Shown here one piece after another: positions 23,001 through 32,719 of a stretch of 64,000 nucleotides of DNA; position 1 is the first letter of the stretch; every line of letters begins with the position of its first letter. The DNA lies in contig JAHLWZ010000676.1 in assembly GCA_020536535.1 (NCBI GenBank), positions 1-64,000 of the forward strand. The letters run 5' to 3'. Position numbers and translations under genes: made by a program. This DNA is from Pelomyxa schiedti (Eukaryota > Protista > Evosea). The notes beneath the pieces are model-generated. The model was given only the letters and a program-made list of their open reading frames with translations. It was not told where the DNA came from and did no database searches.

Positions 23001-26000
23001 CCAGGCACGTTTATGATCTTACATTCACTTCGGTGTTATTAACACCTATTTTCCAGTTCCAGACGCCAGGGTAAAGTGGAAGGTCAGTAATACGGTAACT
23101 ATGAACAATTAGTCTCATCTTAGCTATACACAGTGCCAACCTGGTTCCAGTAGTGACCACAGTGAAACTTTGCGTACTGTTCCAAACATAGAGTGATGCT
23201 ATGCAGGTTTTGGCGTAAGGGCAGGTGGTTCCACAATCGATGGGACTCCACTTAACGTAGAGAGGTTTTTTAAAGTCCTCCACTTCGTTATCAGGGGGCT
23301 CCTGGAGCAAAGGTGGAACTGGATCCTTTCTTATACACACAGTGAATGAACTTAGAGCAAATGGGGTGTAAGTGGCGCCATTGAAGTACCGCAATTCCCA
23401 CTGATAGACAATGGGGAGTGGGGGAAAAGCAGTTTCTGGAGAGTAAGAGGAAGTATTTGTATCATTGAACACTTCTTCAATATAATTAAGGCCAGTGGAA
23501 GTGTCAATAACAGAAAACTCAATAAAAGAAGCCGCTTGCGCCTTGCAGTTATCACCCAAAGGGGGAGCACTCCAATGGAAAATGATTTCATCATTTGCAA
23601 CTGTAGATCCAAGAGAAGGTGAAGTCAAAGATGGTGCCACCAGCAAGTCGTCAGGTACACAATATGTAAAAGTAGTCGAGAGGGATTGGGAACACTTGTT
23701 CAATGTACAGGCAGAAACTGAGACTGAGTTCAGAACTCCCTTCACTACGAAGGCAGAGAAACTCGTTTGCGTGACAGGATAGGTATAGGGTTGTGTATTA
23801 AAAATCACAGTGTAGGTCTGAAGTTGGTTGCATGTAGTTCCCCAGGTTACAGGTTCTACCCATTTGACTGGAACTGTTGAAGAGCCTGTTACCTGGCCAG
23901 TTGGGGTAATGTTGCGAGGGACATCTGGTGAAGTTACCAAACAGATGGTAAATGTCCGCTCCTCAGATACAGATCCTAGCAAACCATTCCAGGCTGTAAC
24001 CCTCCACCACCATTGTCCAGGAGTAAAGGTGTCGACCAAAGATTTCGAGGAAGTAATACTTTGGTTCCACGGCAATGAAATGCTACTTCGGACTTCCACT
24101 ATAAACAATCTCAAAGTAGTTCCGTTGCAGACTTTGCCAAAGGATTTGTAATTTTTGCCCCATTCCAGGGTTATCTCAGCGGTGAGAAAGGAACTATTAG
24201 AAGCCGGTGTACTCAGTAAAGGAACGTCAGGATACGTATTGTTGCAGGTGACTGTCGGTGTAGTAGTGTTAACAGTTACAGTCTTATTTACAACTACTGT
24301 CTGGTTAACTGTAATAGTGCTATTCACAGTGACTGTTGTGTTCACTGGTAATGTGGTATTTATCTGTTTGGTAGTATTGACTGACTTCGTAACGTTAACG
24401 GCAAGGGTTGTGTTGATAGTGCAGTTGGCGGAGATAACTTGACCAGAGGCGCAATAAGCATATGTTGTGGCACCATCAGAACAATTGACAGATACAGTGC
24501 CGTTGACAGTACAATTGACAAGAACAGTTTCGTTTACTACAGCTACAGTAATATTTTCCGTTACAGTGATATTTTCTATGACCGTAGTGTTGATAGTGAC
24601 TGTTGTGTTTATGAGCTTTGTGGTATTCACAGAGATAGTTGTATTCACAGAGATAGTAGAGTTGACTGAGACTGTACTATTAACACTAGTGACAGTGGAA
24701 CTTGGTGCATGATATTCTATGCTTCCAATTCCCAGAGTGCTACTTTCTTGATTATCTGCAAGTACGTACCACCATGAGACCCCTTCTGTGAGGTTAAGAG
24801 TGAGATTTCCTTTCATTCCAGCATCGCGTGCCACTATAGTTTCATTGAATACCACAGTAATATTACAGAGTTGTGTCGCCAAGCATGATTCTCCACATGA
24901 TGGGACTTCCCAGTAAATAGTGATTGTGTAATTTTCTGCAAGGTAGGGAGATCCGGTAGGGGTCAGGGAAGGCTCGTCGGGTGCAGCTAATACACACATC
25001 CCCAAGCTCTGAATTTCAGAAACTGGATTGAGCATACTATTGTGTACTTCTAGTGCCCAATAGAGCATTGAAGCAGTTTTATCAACAACTGCTGGTATAA
25101 AGGTGGTGGAATTTAGATCGGGTATTGACTCCCAGTTGACTGCATCCGAAAATGATGTTATATTGTGTGAGTACCAAATCAATAAAGCTGGTTGATCACG
25201 CTCGCAGTTGAAGCCGTAAGATATTTTCTCCCAAGAAAAACTAGTTACTCCGAACACAAACTTTTCTCCTGTGAGTGGTGATAGTAGCACAGGATCGGCC
25301 TCGGGCGCTGAAATGCAGACATCAAATGTGTTCTTTGTTGTGCTATTTTGCTGTTTTGCGGTGTTGTCTGCCACAACGTTCCAATAGTGGTGACCTGCCC
25401 CGACATTGACACTAATCCATGAACTTGGAGTTGTTCCCACTGCTGTACCATCAAGGTATACAGTATAAAAGCCATCTTCCAATTTGTTGTTAGTTATTTT
25501 TTTTTGTTTTCAGTGGAGAAGATGGTTATGTGAGCATTACCTGTGCCAGGGCAGCTTGTCCCCATGCTGGTTGTTTGAGTCCAAGTTAAATTTACCGTAA
25601 GAAGGGACACGTTGAGCAGTGGAAATAGAACCCCAGACAATGGAGATACTAACGGGAATGGCCAAGGTGATGTTGGTGTACAGTATGTGAAGTTCCAATT
25701 GGCTGATTGAGAAGTGTATGCGGTATTACTGGCTACAATATACCAGTTGTAATTTCCATCCCCGAGCGTGACATTGTGATTGTACCAGGGTACCCGAATA
25801 TTTGTGGCTATGCGAGTGGGAGATGCTGGTTGCAAGCCAAGGAACACATCAAACCACTGATCAGCTGGATAATATACATTGAAACCTGGAATTGCCAATT
25901 TGTGAACTTGGTAGTGAACAACATTGCTCCTACCTGACTGTTTGCAGAGGGACCAGTGCGTAGTGGTACAAACATCCGTTGACCATCCTGAAGAAGTTGC

Positions 26001-27881
26001 AACAACACAGTCTTTTGTTTCAGAATTTGTGAGTCCTCCCGACGGTAAGTAGCTCACTTTGGATCCATCCAACCATTCGAATTTTGTTTCGTTTCTTAGG
26101 GGAAAAAGCTCGATGAGTAGTGTAGTGTACCGACAGGGGGAAACGTACTTGTAATCGTTGAGTCCAATCCAAAAAGACGTTCCAGTATAAAGGGAGCTGG
26201 TGACAAAGGTGGCTTCCTCTTGTGATCCAAAGGAAGCAAGTGTCACATCGACACCATAAGTTTGGCAGTTCTTAATAGCGGAACTGTAATCTTTACCTGA
26301 CGGAACAAGTTTGTAGCATGCAACTGGATACGATACATTCGGCCAGAAAAAGGTAAAGCCAGCAGGGCAGCTTTGAGCTTAATTGCCATGTTAACAATCG
26401 TACAAATTGTGAATTCTTACAGGAATACAACCCCCACTTCAATAATGGCGGGTTCTGTGGCTTGTATGCGGTGTTGGATGGAAAATAGTGAATGGGTGTT
26501 GAAGGGTATTTTGCTGAAGTAATTTTGAAAGAGCTTATAGCAGAAGTGTTTCTTGTTTGTAGTGATTGTCCAACTTTAACCACAGCAGTCACATTCTTGT
26601 GCAACTGAGTGAGACACAATAATGAAATCATGTTGGTACCCAAAAACACTGAGAGTCTGAGAGCACAGTAAACTGCAGACTTGTGGTGTTCAAATCTCGT
26701 TCGATTTTATTGTAAATTGGATTTTCTCCAAGACAATTGTACCACACGTCATAATAAGTTTTGGCTCCTGTGCAAAGTGACCCAGTGGGTACACTTTGCC
26801 AACTTAGTGTTACTGTTCTTGACTGTGTAGGGGTTGTAAGAAATGCGAAAAATAGAACTTGGAACAACATAGCCTATCCAGCTTGGTTCAGGGGAGATCA
26901 AGACTGGAGCTGATGGAGCCCCCAATACACAGAAACTTTGTAATGTCTCAGTGGCAGGGGCAATCCGTACCTCAGAACAGCGGAATTGAACGTAAACGAT
27001 TTTCCAGTCTGGGTCATTACATGGAATGCCAGGCACGTGATTGGGAACCTGATATGTACAGGATGTCCAGTTTTTGTTTCCACACTGTGCCTCCATGAGG
27101 CTTGTGATATCCCCACAGTACTCTGGGAAATATCGTTTTAGTGCATAGTTGGTTCCAGAGGCACTCACGAGCATCATGTTTGGCGTTGCACGCTTTATTT
27201 TTGTCCTTGAATCCAAAAGCATTTTCCACGTGAAGTATTTTACGCGAGTCCGGGCAAGTTATAGTAATCACATGCTCATGTGGTTCATGTGAGTCACAAA
27301 TTTCCCTGTCAGGATAGAATGACGTTAGCAGGTGCTAGACCGACGTAGTTGAAATTCATACGCTAGTTGAGGCAGTGGTGCTGCTCTCCAGTAGTACTGA
27401 CCAGGAAAAAACTGAATATCTAAATGCAACAAGTGTAAGAAGAAACCACAACAAACAAAACAAAAGAACTTTCTAAAAGAAAATTACTTGCAATCCTCTC
27501 ACTAGTAGTGGACGAATAGGTCCTCTTGGATCCCACAACTGAGAAACTAGAGGACGAAGTACCCCACTCAACTTGGAACTGCGAAAGCGCGCTCAGCGCC
27601 GAAGTCGACGTGTCAGGCTCACAGTACAAAGTGTATCCAGTGTACGTGACCTTGAGTTGGACCGTAACTGTCAGATTCCCAGGCCCAAGGGCGAAGCTCG
27701 GCGAGGCGCTAGATACGAGTGTGGGCCCCGGACAAGAGCTGCATTCTGTGTTACATGAGGAGGTCTGCGCCTGCACTGCTGGGATTATGGCATGGTGGGC
27801 TCCCATAATCGTGAGGAGGAGGGCCAGACCCAGGGATATGAGTGGGATTGAGGGTGAGGTGGTTACTTTGTGCGTAGGCAT
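20008..27881 (-). CDS. Large single-pass receptor: signal peptide, SUEL-type lectin, C-type lectin, FN3/Ig-like repeats, N-glycosylated hexapeptide stalk, EGF, TM helix and cytoplasmic RasGAP domain
   Basis: Signal ISLGLALLLTIMGA; C-type lectin FWIGLND...FEWLDGS...DCVV...WSTDVC; repeats ending in G-x-W-W-x-V-x-A-x-N; EGF YCAHGTC...CNCWAHWHGSTC; TM LLGLLALLAVPFIGIPFFALLAFVVV-RRRK; RasGAP VMFRSNSAATK, GAFIFLRF, KMLQNLANG; stop after KSKGEHHHHH. Confidence 0.85.
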
Positions 27882-28308: not shown

Positions 28309-30548
28309 ATGGCGGCTACGATCACAACGAACCAACGACTGATTGAAGAGCTCCAAGGTTTGTTCTTCCTCCCCTTTCGAGCAACGGAACGGCGACCAGT
28401 TGCACTTGTGGGTTGGTTCATGTTGGGGGTATTTGCCAACCGACGTTGGTGTGTTTCCACCACCAGGACTTGGACACTTGGAGACGAGAGCCATCGTGGA
28501 TGCAATGAGGTCAATCCCCAGAGGAAATTTTGTTCCAGAGGCAGGCAGTTCCCAGGCTTATTTCAACTCACCACTCAGGGTCCCTCCTGTGCACATCTCG
28601 TATGGTCTCTTTTTTCGTATTATTAATTAACTGTTGTTCTCGAGGTTATGGGAATTACTTTTTTTTTTTTGTATTGTTTTTTTGACTACTGTCATAGTTA
28701 TTTATTTATGGGTGTAGAAATAAACTAATGGCAGGGCACCTGGAATATATGCGTTGGTATTGGAGAGATTGGGACTTGAGAGTGGACATTCTTTTCTCAA
28801 TGTAGGAAGTGGCTCTGGTTGGTTATCTACTGTGGCTGCACTTCTTGTGGGTGTGGTATGCAACCCTCTTCTAATTTTCTTTTCCCCCCTTTCTTAGCGA
28901 ATATAGAGGGGCCTATCTCATGGAGTTGAGATTTCATACGAAACATTTCTTTTTGCCAAAGAACGGGTTAGGAATTTTGCTCACACGCATCCTGATCTTC
29001 AACTGGCCCCAATCGAATTTGTACTTGGGTCTGGCTGTAATCTGCCCGCTGATGCTTGTAAGTATGATAGGATATATGTGGGAGCAAGTTGCCGAAGAGA
29101 ACAAATTGAGTTTTTCCTCAATCTCTTGACAACCAATGAAGGAAGATTGATTGTACCTTTTATAATGCAAGTTAAGCTCTACTGACCTCCTTAGGTGCCA
29201 TCTGAGTCATCTTTACTGCTTTTTACAAAAAATGGTTCCAGGGTTACTGAAAATTCCCTTACTAGAACTGCGTTCGCTTCATTGATTGACAGTACAGTCG
29301 CTCCTGTCCCATTCAACATTTCACTGGTTCCTATTGTCTTTAAGGACTTCATATAATTTAATCAAAACTATATAGACTAGCCATCAAGCCCAGAAAGCAA
29401 TGTTCCAAAGTATAATTGGTTTGTGTGACTCATGCTTAAAACTTTCCTAACATTGAAAAGAAAAGGGAATTGATATCCCTACCCACGTGAGAAGAGCTTT
29501 CATTGTTGTTCCTCGTGGGCACTTTGTAAATGAGTCCATGCTGCCCGATGCATACCAGGATAGGCCGATCAGAGATGGCCCCCTGCACCTCTCGTAGTCC
29601 TTGATCTTTTACCACTACTCTATTTACACATGAAGGGCTCCACATCTTTATTGTCGCATATTGGACCTCTTGGAGCTGGGTCCCGGACTCTCGTTTCTAA
29701 ATATAGGGAGTGGGTCTGGGTGGCTTTCGACAGTAGTGGGATATTATACTGGTCCGGTGTGCCTGATGTTACCCGGCAATGTGGTTTCACTTTAAACAAG
29801 ATTTCTCGATCAACTGGAATCGAAGTGGAGACTGCAAATATCACATTCTCTATCCAGCGCATTAAGAGTAATTTCTTGTCACTTTGAATCTTCATAATCT
29901 CGTACAGGCTACAAAGAACTGTACGCCAATACGCCCGCCCTACCGGAAATCGACTTGAAATGTGCGAATGTATTTGACTATCCCCACTTTCAGACCTATG
30001 ACCGGGTATATGTTGGTGCGGCCTGTCCAAGACAACAAATACCTTTTTTCCAGCGGTTCCTTAATCCCAATGGAATCTTAATTGTATGGCAATTCCTCTC
30101 CATAATCCGAAATGACAATGACTCTCAAAAGCTACCATCTGAGGATTCCCTGCTAAAAATCCGGTATCAGCAAGGTTCTTTTATCGAGACCACCATTTTA
30201 AATGTGAGGTTTGCTTCCCTGAAGCCCAGTGCAAACACACCCACATCCTCACCCATAACCACAAACACTCTACCTCCGCCCATTCCCATTAAACATTCAC
30301 CTTCGCCAACAACATCAACAACACCAACCGGCACCACACCAACATCGTCAACATCGCCTGGGGCAGCCCATAATTCCCCCCACGCTGTCCAGCCCGACGA
30401 ATGTGCCGTGTGCATGGAAAACGAGCGCAACGCTGCATTTGCACCCTGTGGGCACATGGTCTGCTGCTATGATTGTGCCACAAGGATGAAGAAATGCCCA
30501 ACATGCCGAGGTACAATTGGGTCTGTTCTCAGGCTCTACAAGAGTTAG
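28309..30548 (+). CDS. Tandem protein-L-isoaspartate O-methyltransferase-like (PCMTD-type) domains fused to a C-terminal C3HC4 RING finger
   Basis: Two copies of SFLN(V/I)GSGSGWLST, each preceded by H(I/L)SAP and followed by YDR(I/V)YVGA; C-terminal [36 protein letters not shown]. Confidence 0.85.
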
Positions 30549-30690
30549 AATGCCACTGGATGGGCTATCCAGTCAAAAGAGATTGTGCATGTATCTCGTA
30601 GCGTGCTTCAGAGAACCACCCCAACCAACCGGGAACCTCCAACTTTTTTTGGAAGTCATGTTGTTACTGTAAAAAAAACTTGCTTCGGAA

Positions 30691-32340
30691 ATGTACCAAA
30701 ACAGCCAAAAGAGCCCAAACCGAAAAACAACAAGAAGACAGCGAGACAAACCGGCATCAAAGAACCAAAGAAATAAATACCTTCAAAATGGAGCTTACCA
30801 GGTAAACAGCAGGGCCAATACCACACCCACTGCAACAACAAGTACTACCACCAGTAGTAGTGCAGGTGGTGGTTCAGCAGTGCAAATGACAGACCTGGCA
30901 ATGGCACGTGGGGCTGGTGAGGAGATGCTTGCCCCCAGGTACAGAGTAGTGGGTGATGCAGGGGCAACACCCAGGGATGCAAGGGAACTGGACAGGAGGT
31001 CAAATGAAGAGAAGCTGGTGTTCAAGGTTATTTCTGTCCTTGGGTTTTTGGAAATTTCTTTTTCTTTTTCTTTGTTATTGCTGAAACTTTGGTAGATTAC
31101 CAGGAAATTGTCCTTGGATACAAAGAAGAAATATGTTGGCAAACTGTTTTCCAAGGCACTGGATATCGCGTTCTTTGTGCTGTTACTTGGACTTGGGATA
31201 TATCTCTGCTTTGTAGAACCTAGATTGAATGACGAAGAAAAGCCAGACTTGTACACTTTGTTGGGTTCCCTGTTCTTCTATGCCTTCATTATCCCGGCCA
31301 CTGTGACGTTATGGAGTGTATGTAATTCTGACAATGTTTATGCAATGTTCATGGAGGTGATGTTGAAATGCAGCTGATTATATTGGGATGGCACGCTTCT
31401 CCAAACCACAGAGTGCGGAATTTTATCAAAGTGATTATTTGTGTATTGATATCAGGGGCTGGAGCCTTGGTCTATTTCTACTATGGTGTAAGTTTTTGCA
31501 GTTTGGGCATTCTTTGAACTGATCGCTGCATAGAATCCTGAAGGAGATAGCATTGAAAAGTTGGGTTATACTTTCTTTGAGACTGGAGTTGTATTCTTGG
31601 TGAGCCGATTTTTCTTACTGAAGGAAGACGCCGAAATCGAGTTGGATGAAACAGAGAAAAAACTTAGGATAGCAGAGAAGTCCGCAGCAACAGGGCTGGC
31701 AGCAGGGTGTGTTCACAAGTTAGTTGCAATATTCTGAGCCGATTTAGATATTTCCACAACTTCCTCCAAAAAATTCATGACATACCAGCTACTGCAAAAA
31801 TTGAGGGCCAGGACTACAAAGTGCTGAACAGAAAGCTGTGGGTTGTCATTCCAAGTGACCTAACAGAAACAACTTCGACTGGGAAAATGGGTGCTGGCCG
31901 GCCATTGGTTGACATTGTACCTTGTTCCAGTACAGAATCGCGGCCAATCCGAGCTCCAGTGGCATACATAAACCGTGATACTCACGAAGTGAACGGATTG
32001 TATGACGTTCCTACAACACTTACTGCACTTGTACATCGAAATATTTTCTTGACTGAGCAAGAGACGCGGATCAAGTATATCTTGTAATAGCAAATCAATT
32101 GACTTGTTAACCTCAAAAAGGTCCTCCTCCGGGTGTTGTGGTCAGAGAGGAAAAAGCTCAGCAGTGCAGATAATTCCAGTTTCACAGGAAGTAACTATTT
32201 TCACCAATACATTGCTGGACCTGCTGGAAATGAGACCAGAACTGAATGACCTCGTTCAGATAGTCAGTGTTCCACCCACTCCCCTTGACCAAGAGCGTCT
32301 TTTGCAAGCAATTGCTGATGTGGCATCAACGTCAGAGTGA
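30691..32340 (+). CDS. STING: STING-family protein: 4 TM helices plus bacterial-like STING cyclic-dinucleotide-binding domain
   Basis: Introns 31027-31095, 31318-31373, 31488-31533, 31707-31747 and 32075-32120 (all GT-AG) keep the frame open; spliced motifs AATGLAAGYFHNFL, KLWVVIPSDL, SRPIR, LYDVPTTLTAL, EVTIFTNTLLDLL. Confidence 0.8.
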
Positions 32341-32719
32341 GTGTGGAATTATTTACATTCCCATTTTTTAACGTTCCTCATTTTTAATACTATCTGGCTT
32401 GGGTCGTGCTGCTTAAACACAGTTACGTTCTGAGTGTCCGCGATTGAGTTACCTTAATACAAAAAATTGTACAGTATTACCTTTGTCAGTTGTTTAGACA
32501 AGCTATCTGTAAATTATGCAAGCAGAAGCAAAAATAGGATTGGGTTGCCTGGCAATAAAATTGCCACGCACAAACCTCCCATAATGCCTCCCAGTTGTTG
32601 TTCGCATGTGCTTGATAACGGTGTCATCACTGGAATCAAGCACTTCCCTACCATAGCCAAAAAAAAAGCCTTTGGATAGTGATACGGAATTCGCCGAAGT
32701 CGATCTTTGCTGAACAAAC

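Follow-up and report, generated by a model that had tools for sequence, protein, structure and literature searches.

A six-exon gene of Pelomyxa schiedti predicted to encode a bacteria-like STING with four membrane helices and a cyclic dinucleotide-binding domain

The stretch analysed here (the window) comprises positions 1 to 64,000 of contig JAHLWZ010000676.1 of the amoeba Pelomyxa schiedti. On its plus strand, from 30691 or 30886 to 32340, lies a six-exon gene whose product is predicted to carry four transmembrane (TM) helices ahead of a STING domain of bacterial type. The five introns are 41–69 nucleotides (nt) long, with GT..AG ends and compatible phases, and their removal leaves one frame through six exons to a TGA at 32338-32340; each of them, if kept, brings in a stop or a frameshift. 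This is a real gene, and as judged from its sequence it is a nuclear member of the eukaryotic group known as bacteria-like STINGs (blSTINGs). An initial annotation of the window had proposed five short introns and quoted peptides from the spliced product; all five introns were recovered with fitting ends and phases, and the peptides are present in the exons. The features of the gene are as follows.

Exon 1, 30691..31026, plus strand: Ser/Thr-rich, non-membrane N-terminus, drawn from the open reading frame (ORF) and its frame
Exon 1 start candidates, plus strand: first ATG at 30691, next in-frame ATGs at 30886, 30901 and 30925; start uncertain
Intron 1, 31027..31095, plus strand: 69 nt, GTTATT..TGGTAG, phase 0, in-frame TAG at its end
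Exon 2, 31096..31317, plus strand: basic juxtamembrane stretch, TM1, acidic loop, and TM2 running on into exon 3
TM1, 31159-31215, plus strand: exon 2, 19-residue hydropathy window 2.49
TM2, 31255-31311, plus strand: exon 2, 19-residue hydropathy window 1.80
Intron 2, 31318..31373, plus strand: 56 nt, GTATGT..ATGCAG; holds ATG 31368, the start of the NCBI model
Exon 3, 31374..31487, plus strand: basic loop 'HRVRNFIK' and TM3
TM3, 31422-31478, plus strand: exon 3, 19-residue hydropathy window 2.27
Intron 3, 31488..31533, plus strand: 46 nt, GTAAGT..GCATAG; junction also in the NCBI model
Exon 4, 31534..31706, plus strand: acidic loop, TM4, acidic connector helix, and start of STING helix alpha1 ('KSAATGLAAG')
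TM4, 31561-31620, plus strand: exon 4, weaker helix 'LGYTFFETGVVFLVSRFFLL'
Intron 4, 31707..31747, plus strand: 41 nt, GTGTGT..ATTTAG, phase 2; junction also in the NCBI model
Exon 5, 31748..32074, plus strand: core of the STING domain, with F103 (31761-31763), 'VVIPSDL', lid and 'LYDVPTT'
Lid R163-P-I165-R166, 31941-31952, plus strand: exon 5, placed by residue mapping to MySTING
D184 of 'LYDVPTT', 32004-32006, plus strand: exon 5, placed by residue mapping to MySTING
Intron 5, 32075..32120, plus strand: 46 nt, GTATAT..AAAAAG, phase 2; junction also in the NCBI model
Exon 6, 32121..32340, plus strand: loop, helix alpha3 'EVTIFTNTLLDLL', last strand 'VQIVSV', 'PPTPL', C-terminal helix, and TGA at 32338-32340

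Intron 4 divides the codon of G98 within helix alpha1, between 'GLAAG' and 'YFHNF', and the spliced 'LAAGYFHNF' aligns without gaps to bacterial 'LAIGYFENF'; the earlier proposal that one intron splits the key helix is borne out. The gene had also been described as hidden. It is in fact already annotated by NCBI, but unnamed and truncated at its N-terminus, as 'hypothetical protein Pelo_8614 [Pelomyxa schiedti]' (P0001 below), an entry of 279 residues on a 177-kb contig with a precomputed PF20300 match. P0001 begins at ATG 31368, inside intron 2, and uses introns 3, 4 and 5 exactly, so that an independent gene caller has placed three of the junctions, the key-helix one among them, where they are placed here. 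Lacking exons 1 and 2, the deposited protein keeps only TM3 and TM4 of the four membrane helices. There is no Met in exon 2, and an upstream exon is therefore needed. Intron 1 is absent from the NCBI model, and its support is frame continuity and the N-terminal architecture of homologues, these two only. The junction at intron 2 is crossed by the order '..LW' then '[FH]R..N.IK' seen in homologues (by eye).

At the 3′ end, exon 6 aligns with the C-terminal helix of bacterial STING. A donor-like GTGAGT at 32337-32342 overlaps the TGA stop. A seventh exon reached through this donor was considered and rejected: no convincing downstream exon was found, and homologues stop at the same point with a similar 'SVP.TPL..E.L' tail (the Cavostelium blSTING also has it at its extreme end), which argues that the predicted stop at 32340 is real.

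Exons were searched separately, with P0001 standing for exons 3-6; TM1 and TM2, both in exon 2, lie outside the folded model, in which TM3 (residues 14-39) and TM4 are helices. Exon-by-exon hydropathy gives three strong windows and one weaker one ahead of the domain, in agreement with the four hydrophobic helices first noted. Loop charges alternate basic, acidic, basic, acidic, which by the positive-inside rule agrees with an N-in/C-in arrangement of the kind found in human STING, with the N-terminus predicted to face the cytosol.

Exon 5 alone matches prok_STING (PF20300) at 31.6 bits (cut-off 27.1), and P0001 matches it at 43.9 bits (E 2.9e-11, profile positions 1-104), compared with 12.4 bits to the animal family STING_LBD (PF15009, cut-off 27). 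Among solved structures, P0001 has sequence matches to the bacterial STINGs 7ebl (E 1.7e-4) and 8hwj. Bacterial STINGs were gathered by a degenerate motif pattern, by scanning 401 genomes of Bacteroidota with Pfam and by a profile search, giving an alignment of 30 rows with 16–28% identity to P0001, in which L95, A96, Y99, P133, D184 and P186 are invariant.

An AlphaFold model built on this alignment has predicted local distance difference test (pLDDT) values of 80-94 across most of residues 91-279, with helices 227-243 and 264-277 in exon 6. The best 50 Foldseek matches in the PDB are all STINGs, bacterial first (E 2e-7) and, after these, human, anemone and others. By VIA-align, Z is 14.3 to SfSTING (7un9; root mean square deviation 3.7 Å over 159 residues), and for animal STINGs it is 12-13; because the model rests on an alignment of bacterial STINGs, this match is supportive and not independent. 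The profile scores and the STING fold (Z 12-14) are as expected for the bacterial-type domain of the initial annotation. Alignments to animal STINGs extend to residue 277-279, taking in the C-terminal helix 264-277, whereas most alignments to bacterial chains stop at residues 257-259. Animal STING (TMEM173) shares this fold to the last residue, as well as four membrane helices followed by a ligand-binding domain. The Pelomyxa protein differs from it in falling below the STING_LBD cut-off, in its two-stranded, bacterial-like lid and in lacking a C-terminal TBK1/IRF3 tail, and no cGAS-like enzyme was found in its genome. Pfam scans gave no TIR match on any exon or on P0001 (PF10137 scores 97.9 bits on L012, a bacterial control), and the protein ends 23 residues past its last strand; scan and sequence agree with the claim that TIR domain and TBK1/IRF3 tail are both missing.

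The blSTINGs were defined as proteins with a PF20300-type domain behind four predicted helices, found in Amoebozoa, Rhizaria, choanoflagellates, stramenopiles and haptophytes, and most of the species that have them lack a cGAS/DncV-like nucleotidyltransferase (CD-NTase) (Culbertson and Levin 2023, PMC10732462). The trees and sequence files of that study include Armaparvus, Filamoeba, Cavostelium, Trichosphaerium and Stenamoeba but no archamoeba, and Pelomyxa sp. JSP occurs only in the viperin files (PMC10732462). Motifs in the exons of the window were compared by eye, with no computation, against the sequences printed in files S11, S12 and S31 of PMC10732462:

Before and in TM1, exon 2: 'K.LD[IV]A[FL]FV.L..[IL]G..L', common to amoebozoan blSTINGs
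TM2 end, then basic loop, across intron 2: 'P..[LV][ST]LW', then '[FH]R..N.IK'
TM4 and connector, exon 4: 'FE[IT]G[AV][LV]F[FL]..[KR]FF[FL]L.ED.E', in amoebozoan and choanoflagellate blSTINGs
STING helix alpha1, across intron 4: 'G[ML]A..YF.NF'
Lid, exon 5: 'RP[MI]'
Asp motif, exon 5: 'GL[FY]D[IV]PT'
Tail, exon 6: 'E[IV]..F.N.L..L....P.....V.IVS[LV]PP'

Because these motifs span the whole length of the protein, they support exon 2 together with introns 1 and 2, and place the gene in the blSTING group. With the blSTINGs of Amoebozoa and acanthoecids it shares four N-terminal membrane helices before a PF20300-type domain, the absence of TIR and kinase-recruiting tail, a host genome without detectable CD-NTase, and motifs along the whole protein, including the 'LSLW' end of TM2, 'FE.G..F...FF.L.ED' in TM4, 'G.A..YF.NF', 'D[IVF]PT' and 'IVS[VL]PP'. 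It is nevertheless divergent, with 'GYFHNF' and 'PTTL' as in bacteria where other blSTINGs have 'SYFYNF' and 'PTI[IV]S', and with a lid reading 'SRPIR' and not 'HRPMF'. It also comes from a new lineage, the Archamoebae, in an anaerobe with obligate intracellular prokaryotes, and Pelomyxa is absent from published STING lists. The class is already described in Amoebozoa; the Pelomyxa gene adds a lineage to it, and the initial annotation overrated its novelty.

Searches for closer relatives returned little. Exon 5 searched by phmmer against 1.84 billion representatives found only P0001 (100% identical) and low-complexity noise, and a word-based search of 5.8 billion proteins with P0001, whole and as residues 85-279, found only P0001 itself. 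No related loci were found in genome and metagenome contigs and no usable match in the ESM Atlas; the best 120 matches listed by the profile search are bacterial TIR-STINGs only.

That the stretch is bacterial, either as contamination from a symbiont or prey organism or because a bacterial TM-STING was transferred very recently, is extremely improbable. The domain is of a bacterial Pfam type, and one bacterial two-helix STING (L025, described below) is similar even in its last membrane helix; but the frame is broken by five introns of spliceosomal type, the neighbouring genes are eukaryotic in style (RING finger, C-type lectin), the contig belongs to a scaffold of 177 kb, no close bacterial relative came out of the protein word searches or of the genome and metagenome contigs, and at the level of motifs the protein is most like eukaryotic blSTINGs, which have the same four-helix domain. 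Contamination was rejected on the introns, the neighbour genes and the eukaryotic homologues. The origin in the nuclear genome is seen in the five GT-AG introns, the P. schiedti assembly and the eukaryote-type neighbours. The assembly that holds the window has 52,367,397 bases in 5337 contigs, and the published single-cell assembly of P. schiedti is given as 52.4 Mb in 5337 scaffolds, with 7.4 introns per gene, 98.4% of them GT-AG (PMC8887013). The STING gene is single copy in the assembly. With the STING effectors of bacterial cyclic oligonucleotide-based antiphage signalling systems (CBASS), namely Cap12 TIR-STING and the 2-TM form TM-STING, the Pelomyxa protein shares Pfam family and fold, 20-29% identity over the domain, the guanine-reading Arg and Asp and the stacking position in alpha1, and a bacterial TM-STING scores much as P0001 does against PF20300 (41.3 and 43.9 bits). 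It differs from them in having no TIR, four and not two membrane helices, an extra C-terminal helix and introns, and no adjacent or genomic CD-NTase was detected in Pelomyxa.

Four sequencing runs, all from one study, hold the stretch: two DNA-like contig sets, in which the locus is unspliced, and two single-cell RNA libraries. RNA contigs of the upstream gene end at 30635-30663, and ATG 30691 lies only about 28 nt beyond. An extra C follows in the C-run after 30713, at full depth in one DNA run (X3), but is missing from the second run of the same sample. For these reasons ATG 30886 is as likely a start as 30691. At 30690-30990 both DNA runs of the sample are fragmented into small contigs, which suggests that the putative exon 1 is heterogeneous or of low complexity.

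The RNA runs are tiny (53-98 million letters), and of the upstream neighbour nothing but the final 140-160 nt is seen in them; the gene structure is a predicted one, its splicing and expression putative. The gene might then be a silent or decaying relic with no sensing role, unexpressed or expressed only as the truncated two-helix form deposited at NCBI. RNA coverage is zero in both runs that hold the neighbour gene, the deposited model begins inside intron 2, and the data set of Culbertson and Levin includes a Pelomyxa sp. transcriptome from which came a viperin and no STING. Against this, all six exons are open, all five introns have GT-AG ends and matching phases, the family motifs are kept over the full length including exon 2, and libraries so small, from single cells, show no more than the neighbour's 3′ end. 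A relic is very unlikely.

The likely ligand was approached through the four contacts described for bacterial STINGs specific for cyclic di-GMP (c-di-GMP): a stacking residue in alpha1 (F171 in PcSTING, L169 in MySTING), a lid Arg (R233/R230) that reads guanine O6/N7, a lid Tyr/Phe two residues further on, and an Asp (D252/D251) that reads N2 (Ko et al., PMC8748872). One of the proteins gathered (L011) has the residues of MySTING at exactly the same numbers, and alignment through it transfers MySTING L169, R230 and D251 to F103, R163 and D184 of P0001, and the lid Tyr/Phe position to I165. Three of the four contact residues are thus kept, while the lid aromatic is an Ile, followed by R166. The blSTINGs of the choanoflagellates Stephanoeca and Diaphanoeca bind 3'3'-c-di-GMP (dissociation constant 0.6-1.8 µM) and do not bind 2'3'-cyclic GMP-AMP (cGAMP), 3'3'-cGAMP or c-di-AMP (preprint 10.1101/2025.09.04.674280); their printed sequences share the 'RPM' lid and the Asp. 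By analogy, the Pelomyxa protein probably senses bacterial c-di-GMP. A role as cyclic dinucleotide sensor is backed for the class by c-di-GMP binding of these two members, and for the Pelomyxa protein we infer it.

No enzyme that could supply the ligand was found: exon-wise Pfam scans of the whole assembly gave no Mab-21, SMODS, DncV-like NTFase, GGDEF or DAC domain, and none for animal STING_LBD (PF15009). The initial annotation had seen no CD-NTase in the window, and this holds and now extends to the whole assembly and to cyclic-dinucleotide cyclase domains. The cytoplasm of P. schiedti carries free Ca. Syntrophus and Ca. Methanoregula, and a clostridial symbiont resides in vacuoles (PMC10579272). 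The three symbionts are named Ca. Syntrophus pelomyxae, Ca. Vesiculincola pelomyxae and Ca. Methanoregula pelomyxae.

A real receptor with another ligand (3'3'-cGAMP, c-di-AMP or the product of a missed endogenous cyclase) is an unlikely alternative, though one of some weight. The lid R-P-I-R has neither the RX(Y/F) nor the RXR of the two bacterial classes (no Y/F and no second R at that position), the bacterial STING structure 8hwj is bound to c-di-AMP, and the cyclase searches were exon-wise on a single-cell assembly, two of them without a positive control. Clostridial and archaeal groups like the symbionts of P. schiedti typically make c-di-AMP. The guanine-reading pair R163 and D184 is kept, however, and the blSTINGs with an 'RPM' lid bind c-di-GMP and none of 2'3'-cGAMP, 3'3'-cGAMP and c-di-AMP.

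Several points weigh against the assignment of the gene as a six-exon blSTING that senses c-di-GMP. The stacker tied to c-di-GMP specificity, Y/F in bacterial class I, is I165 here and Met in other blSTINGs, and ligand specificity therefore cannot be read from the sequence. A complex prediction of the dimer with c-di-GMP spoke neither for nor against. The cyclase negatives are weak, coming from an exon-wise search for short exons in an assembly of seven single cells, in which STING itself was caught only via its largest exon (30.5 bits) and two cyclase families had no positive control. The structure model leans to the bacterial STING fold, its input alignment consisting of bacterial STINGs. 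The blSTING placement comes from reading printed sequences and not from a computed tree, the deposited model has neither intron 1 nor intron 2, and the two small RNA runs cover only the 3′ end of the upstream gene, with no reads on the STING gene and no junctions.

With these points counted, good confidence is still placed in the following description: the single STING gene of P. schiedti is a six-exon nuclear blSTING with four helices, an acidic connector helix and a bacterial-type cyclic dinucleotide-binding domain, for which c-di-GMP is the most likely ligand. By comparison with characterised relatives, the domain would dimerise, and its two-stranded lid would close on a cyclic dinucleotide with 3'-5' linkages, of which 3'3'-c-di-GMP is the most likely, with F103 stacking on the base and R163 and D184 reading guanine. 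The genome searches having turned up no cyclase, bacteria would be the source of the ligand, whether prey or symbionts living inside the amoeba. The signal may then pass to the four-helix membrane domain; this is the least certain step and is drawn from the architecture only. The domain could act by oligomerising, with leakage of ions, remodelling of membranes or autophagy as the outcome, modes known from animal STING and bacterial TM-STING. As the protein has neither a TIR enzyme nor a tail that recruits kinases, the output would not run through either of these. A cyclic dinucleotide sensor acting through its membrane domain is a hypothesis already published for the blSTING class (PMC10732462).

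One of the bacterial STINGs gathered for the alignment, the two-helix L025 (G298:C43; L025:1369-2088, minus strand; 240 residues; PF20300 at 41.3 bits), closely resembles the Pelomyxa protein in its last membrane helix ('TGVVFLLS') and in 'GYFHNF'. Over the last membrane helix, connector and alpha1, L025 and P0001 are 42% identical across 53 residues (pairwise E 5e-7), and when only the helix is compared, its score is reached in 5 of 2000 shuffles. No such resemblance to P0001 is seen in two other bacterial TM-STINGs, and no further TM-STINGs of the L025 type were found, L025 being a singleton among 277 genomes of its order. It is a lead and no more, set against the published view that TM-STING architectures are convergent. 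It is quite unlikely that the last helix and connector of blSTINGs share descent with their counterparts in bacterial two-helix TM-STINGs, the architecture having been inherited and extended, and that the Pelomyxa receptor polices obligate cytoplasmic partners rather than infection.

Other bacterial STINGs were noted in passing. A bacterial ORF of 544 residues (G349:C1; L022:415-2046, plus strand) has a STING domain at residues 363-503 and no Pfam match in its N-terminal 360 residues, and may be an undescribed STING fusion. Flavobacterium daejeonense has two STING genes (G003:C13:416-826 and G003:C9:48075-48473), one a TIR-STING (134 bits) and the second scoring 58.5 bits in an open frame of 239 residues.

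The surroundings of the gene in the window were also inspected. The upstream neighbour (29955-30548, plus strand) ends in a C3HC4 RING finger (PF13920, 57.5 bits). About 5 kb upstream and on the opposite strand, an ORF at 25494-26246 (minus strand) carries a C-type lectin domain (PF00059, 34.9 bits), and the 822-residue ORF adjoining it (23011-25482, minus strand) has no Pfam match.

The Pelomyxa gene is the first archamoebal and the first anaerobic member of the blSTINGs, and widens their spread among Amoebozoa. It also comes with a corrected gene model, in which exons 1 and 2 supply what the deposited protein lacks. The cytoplasm of its host is permanently home to bacteria and archaea, which raises the question of how the predicted sensor would be kept silent toward these residents or used to control them.

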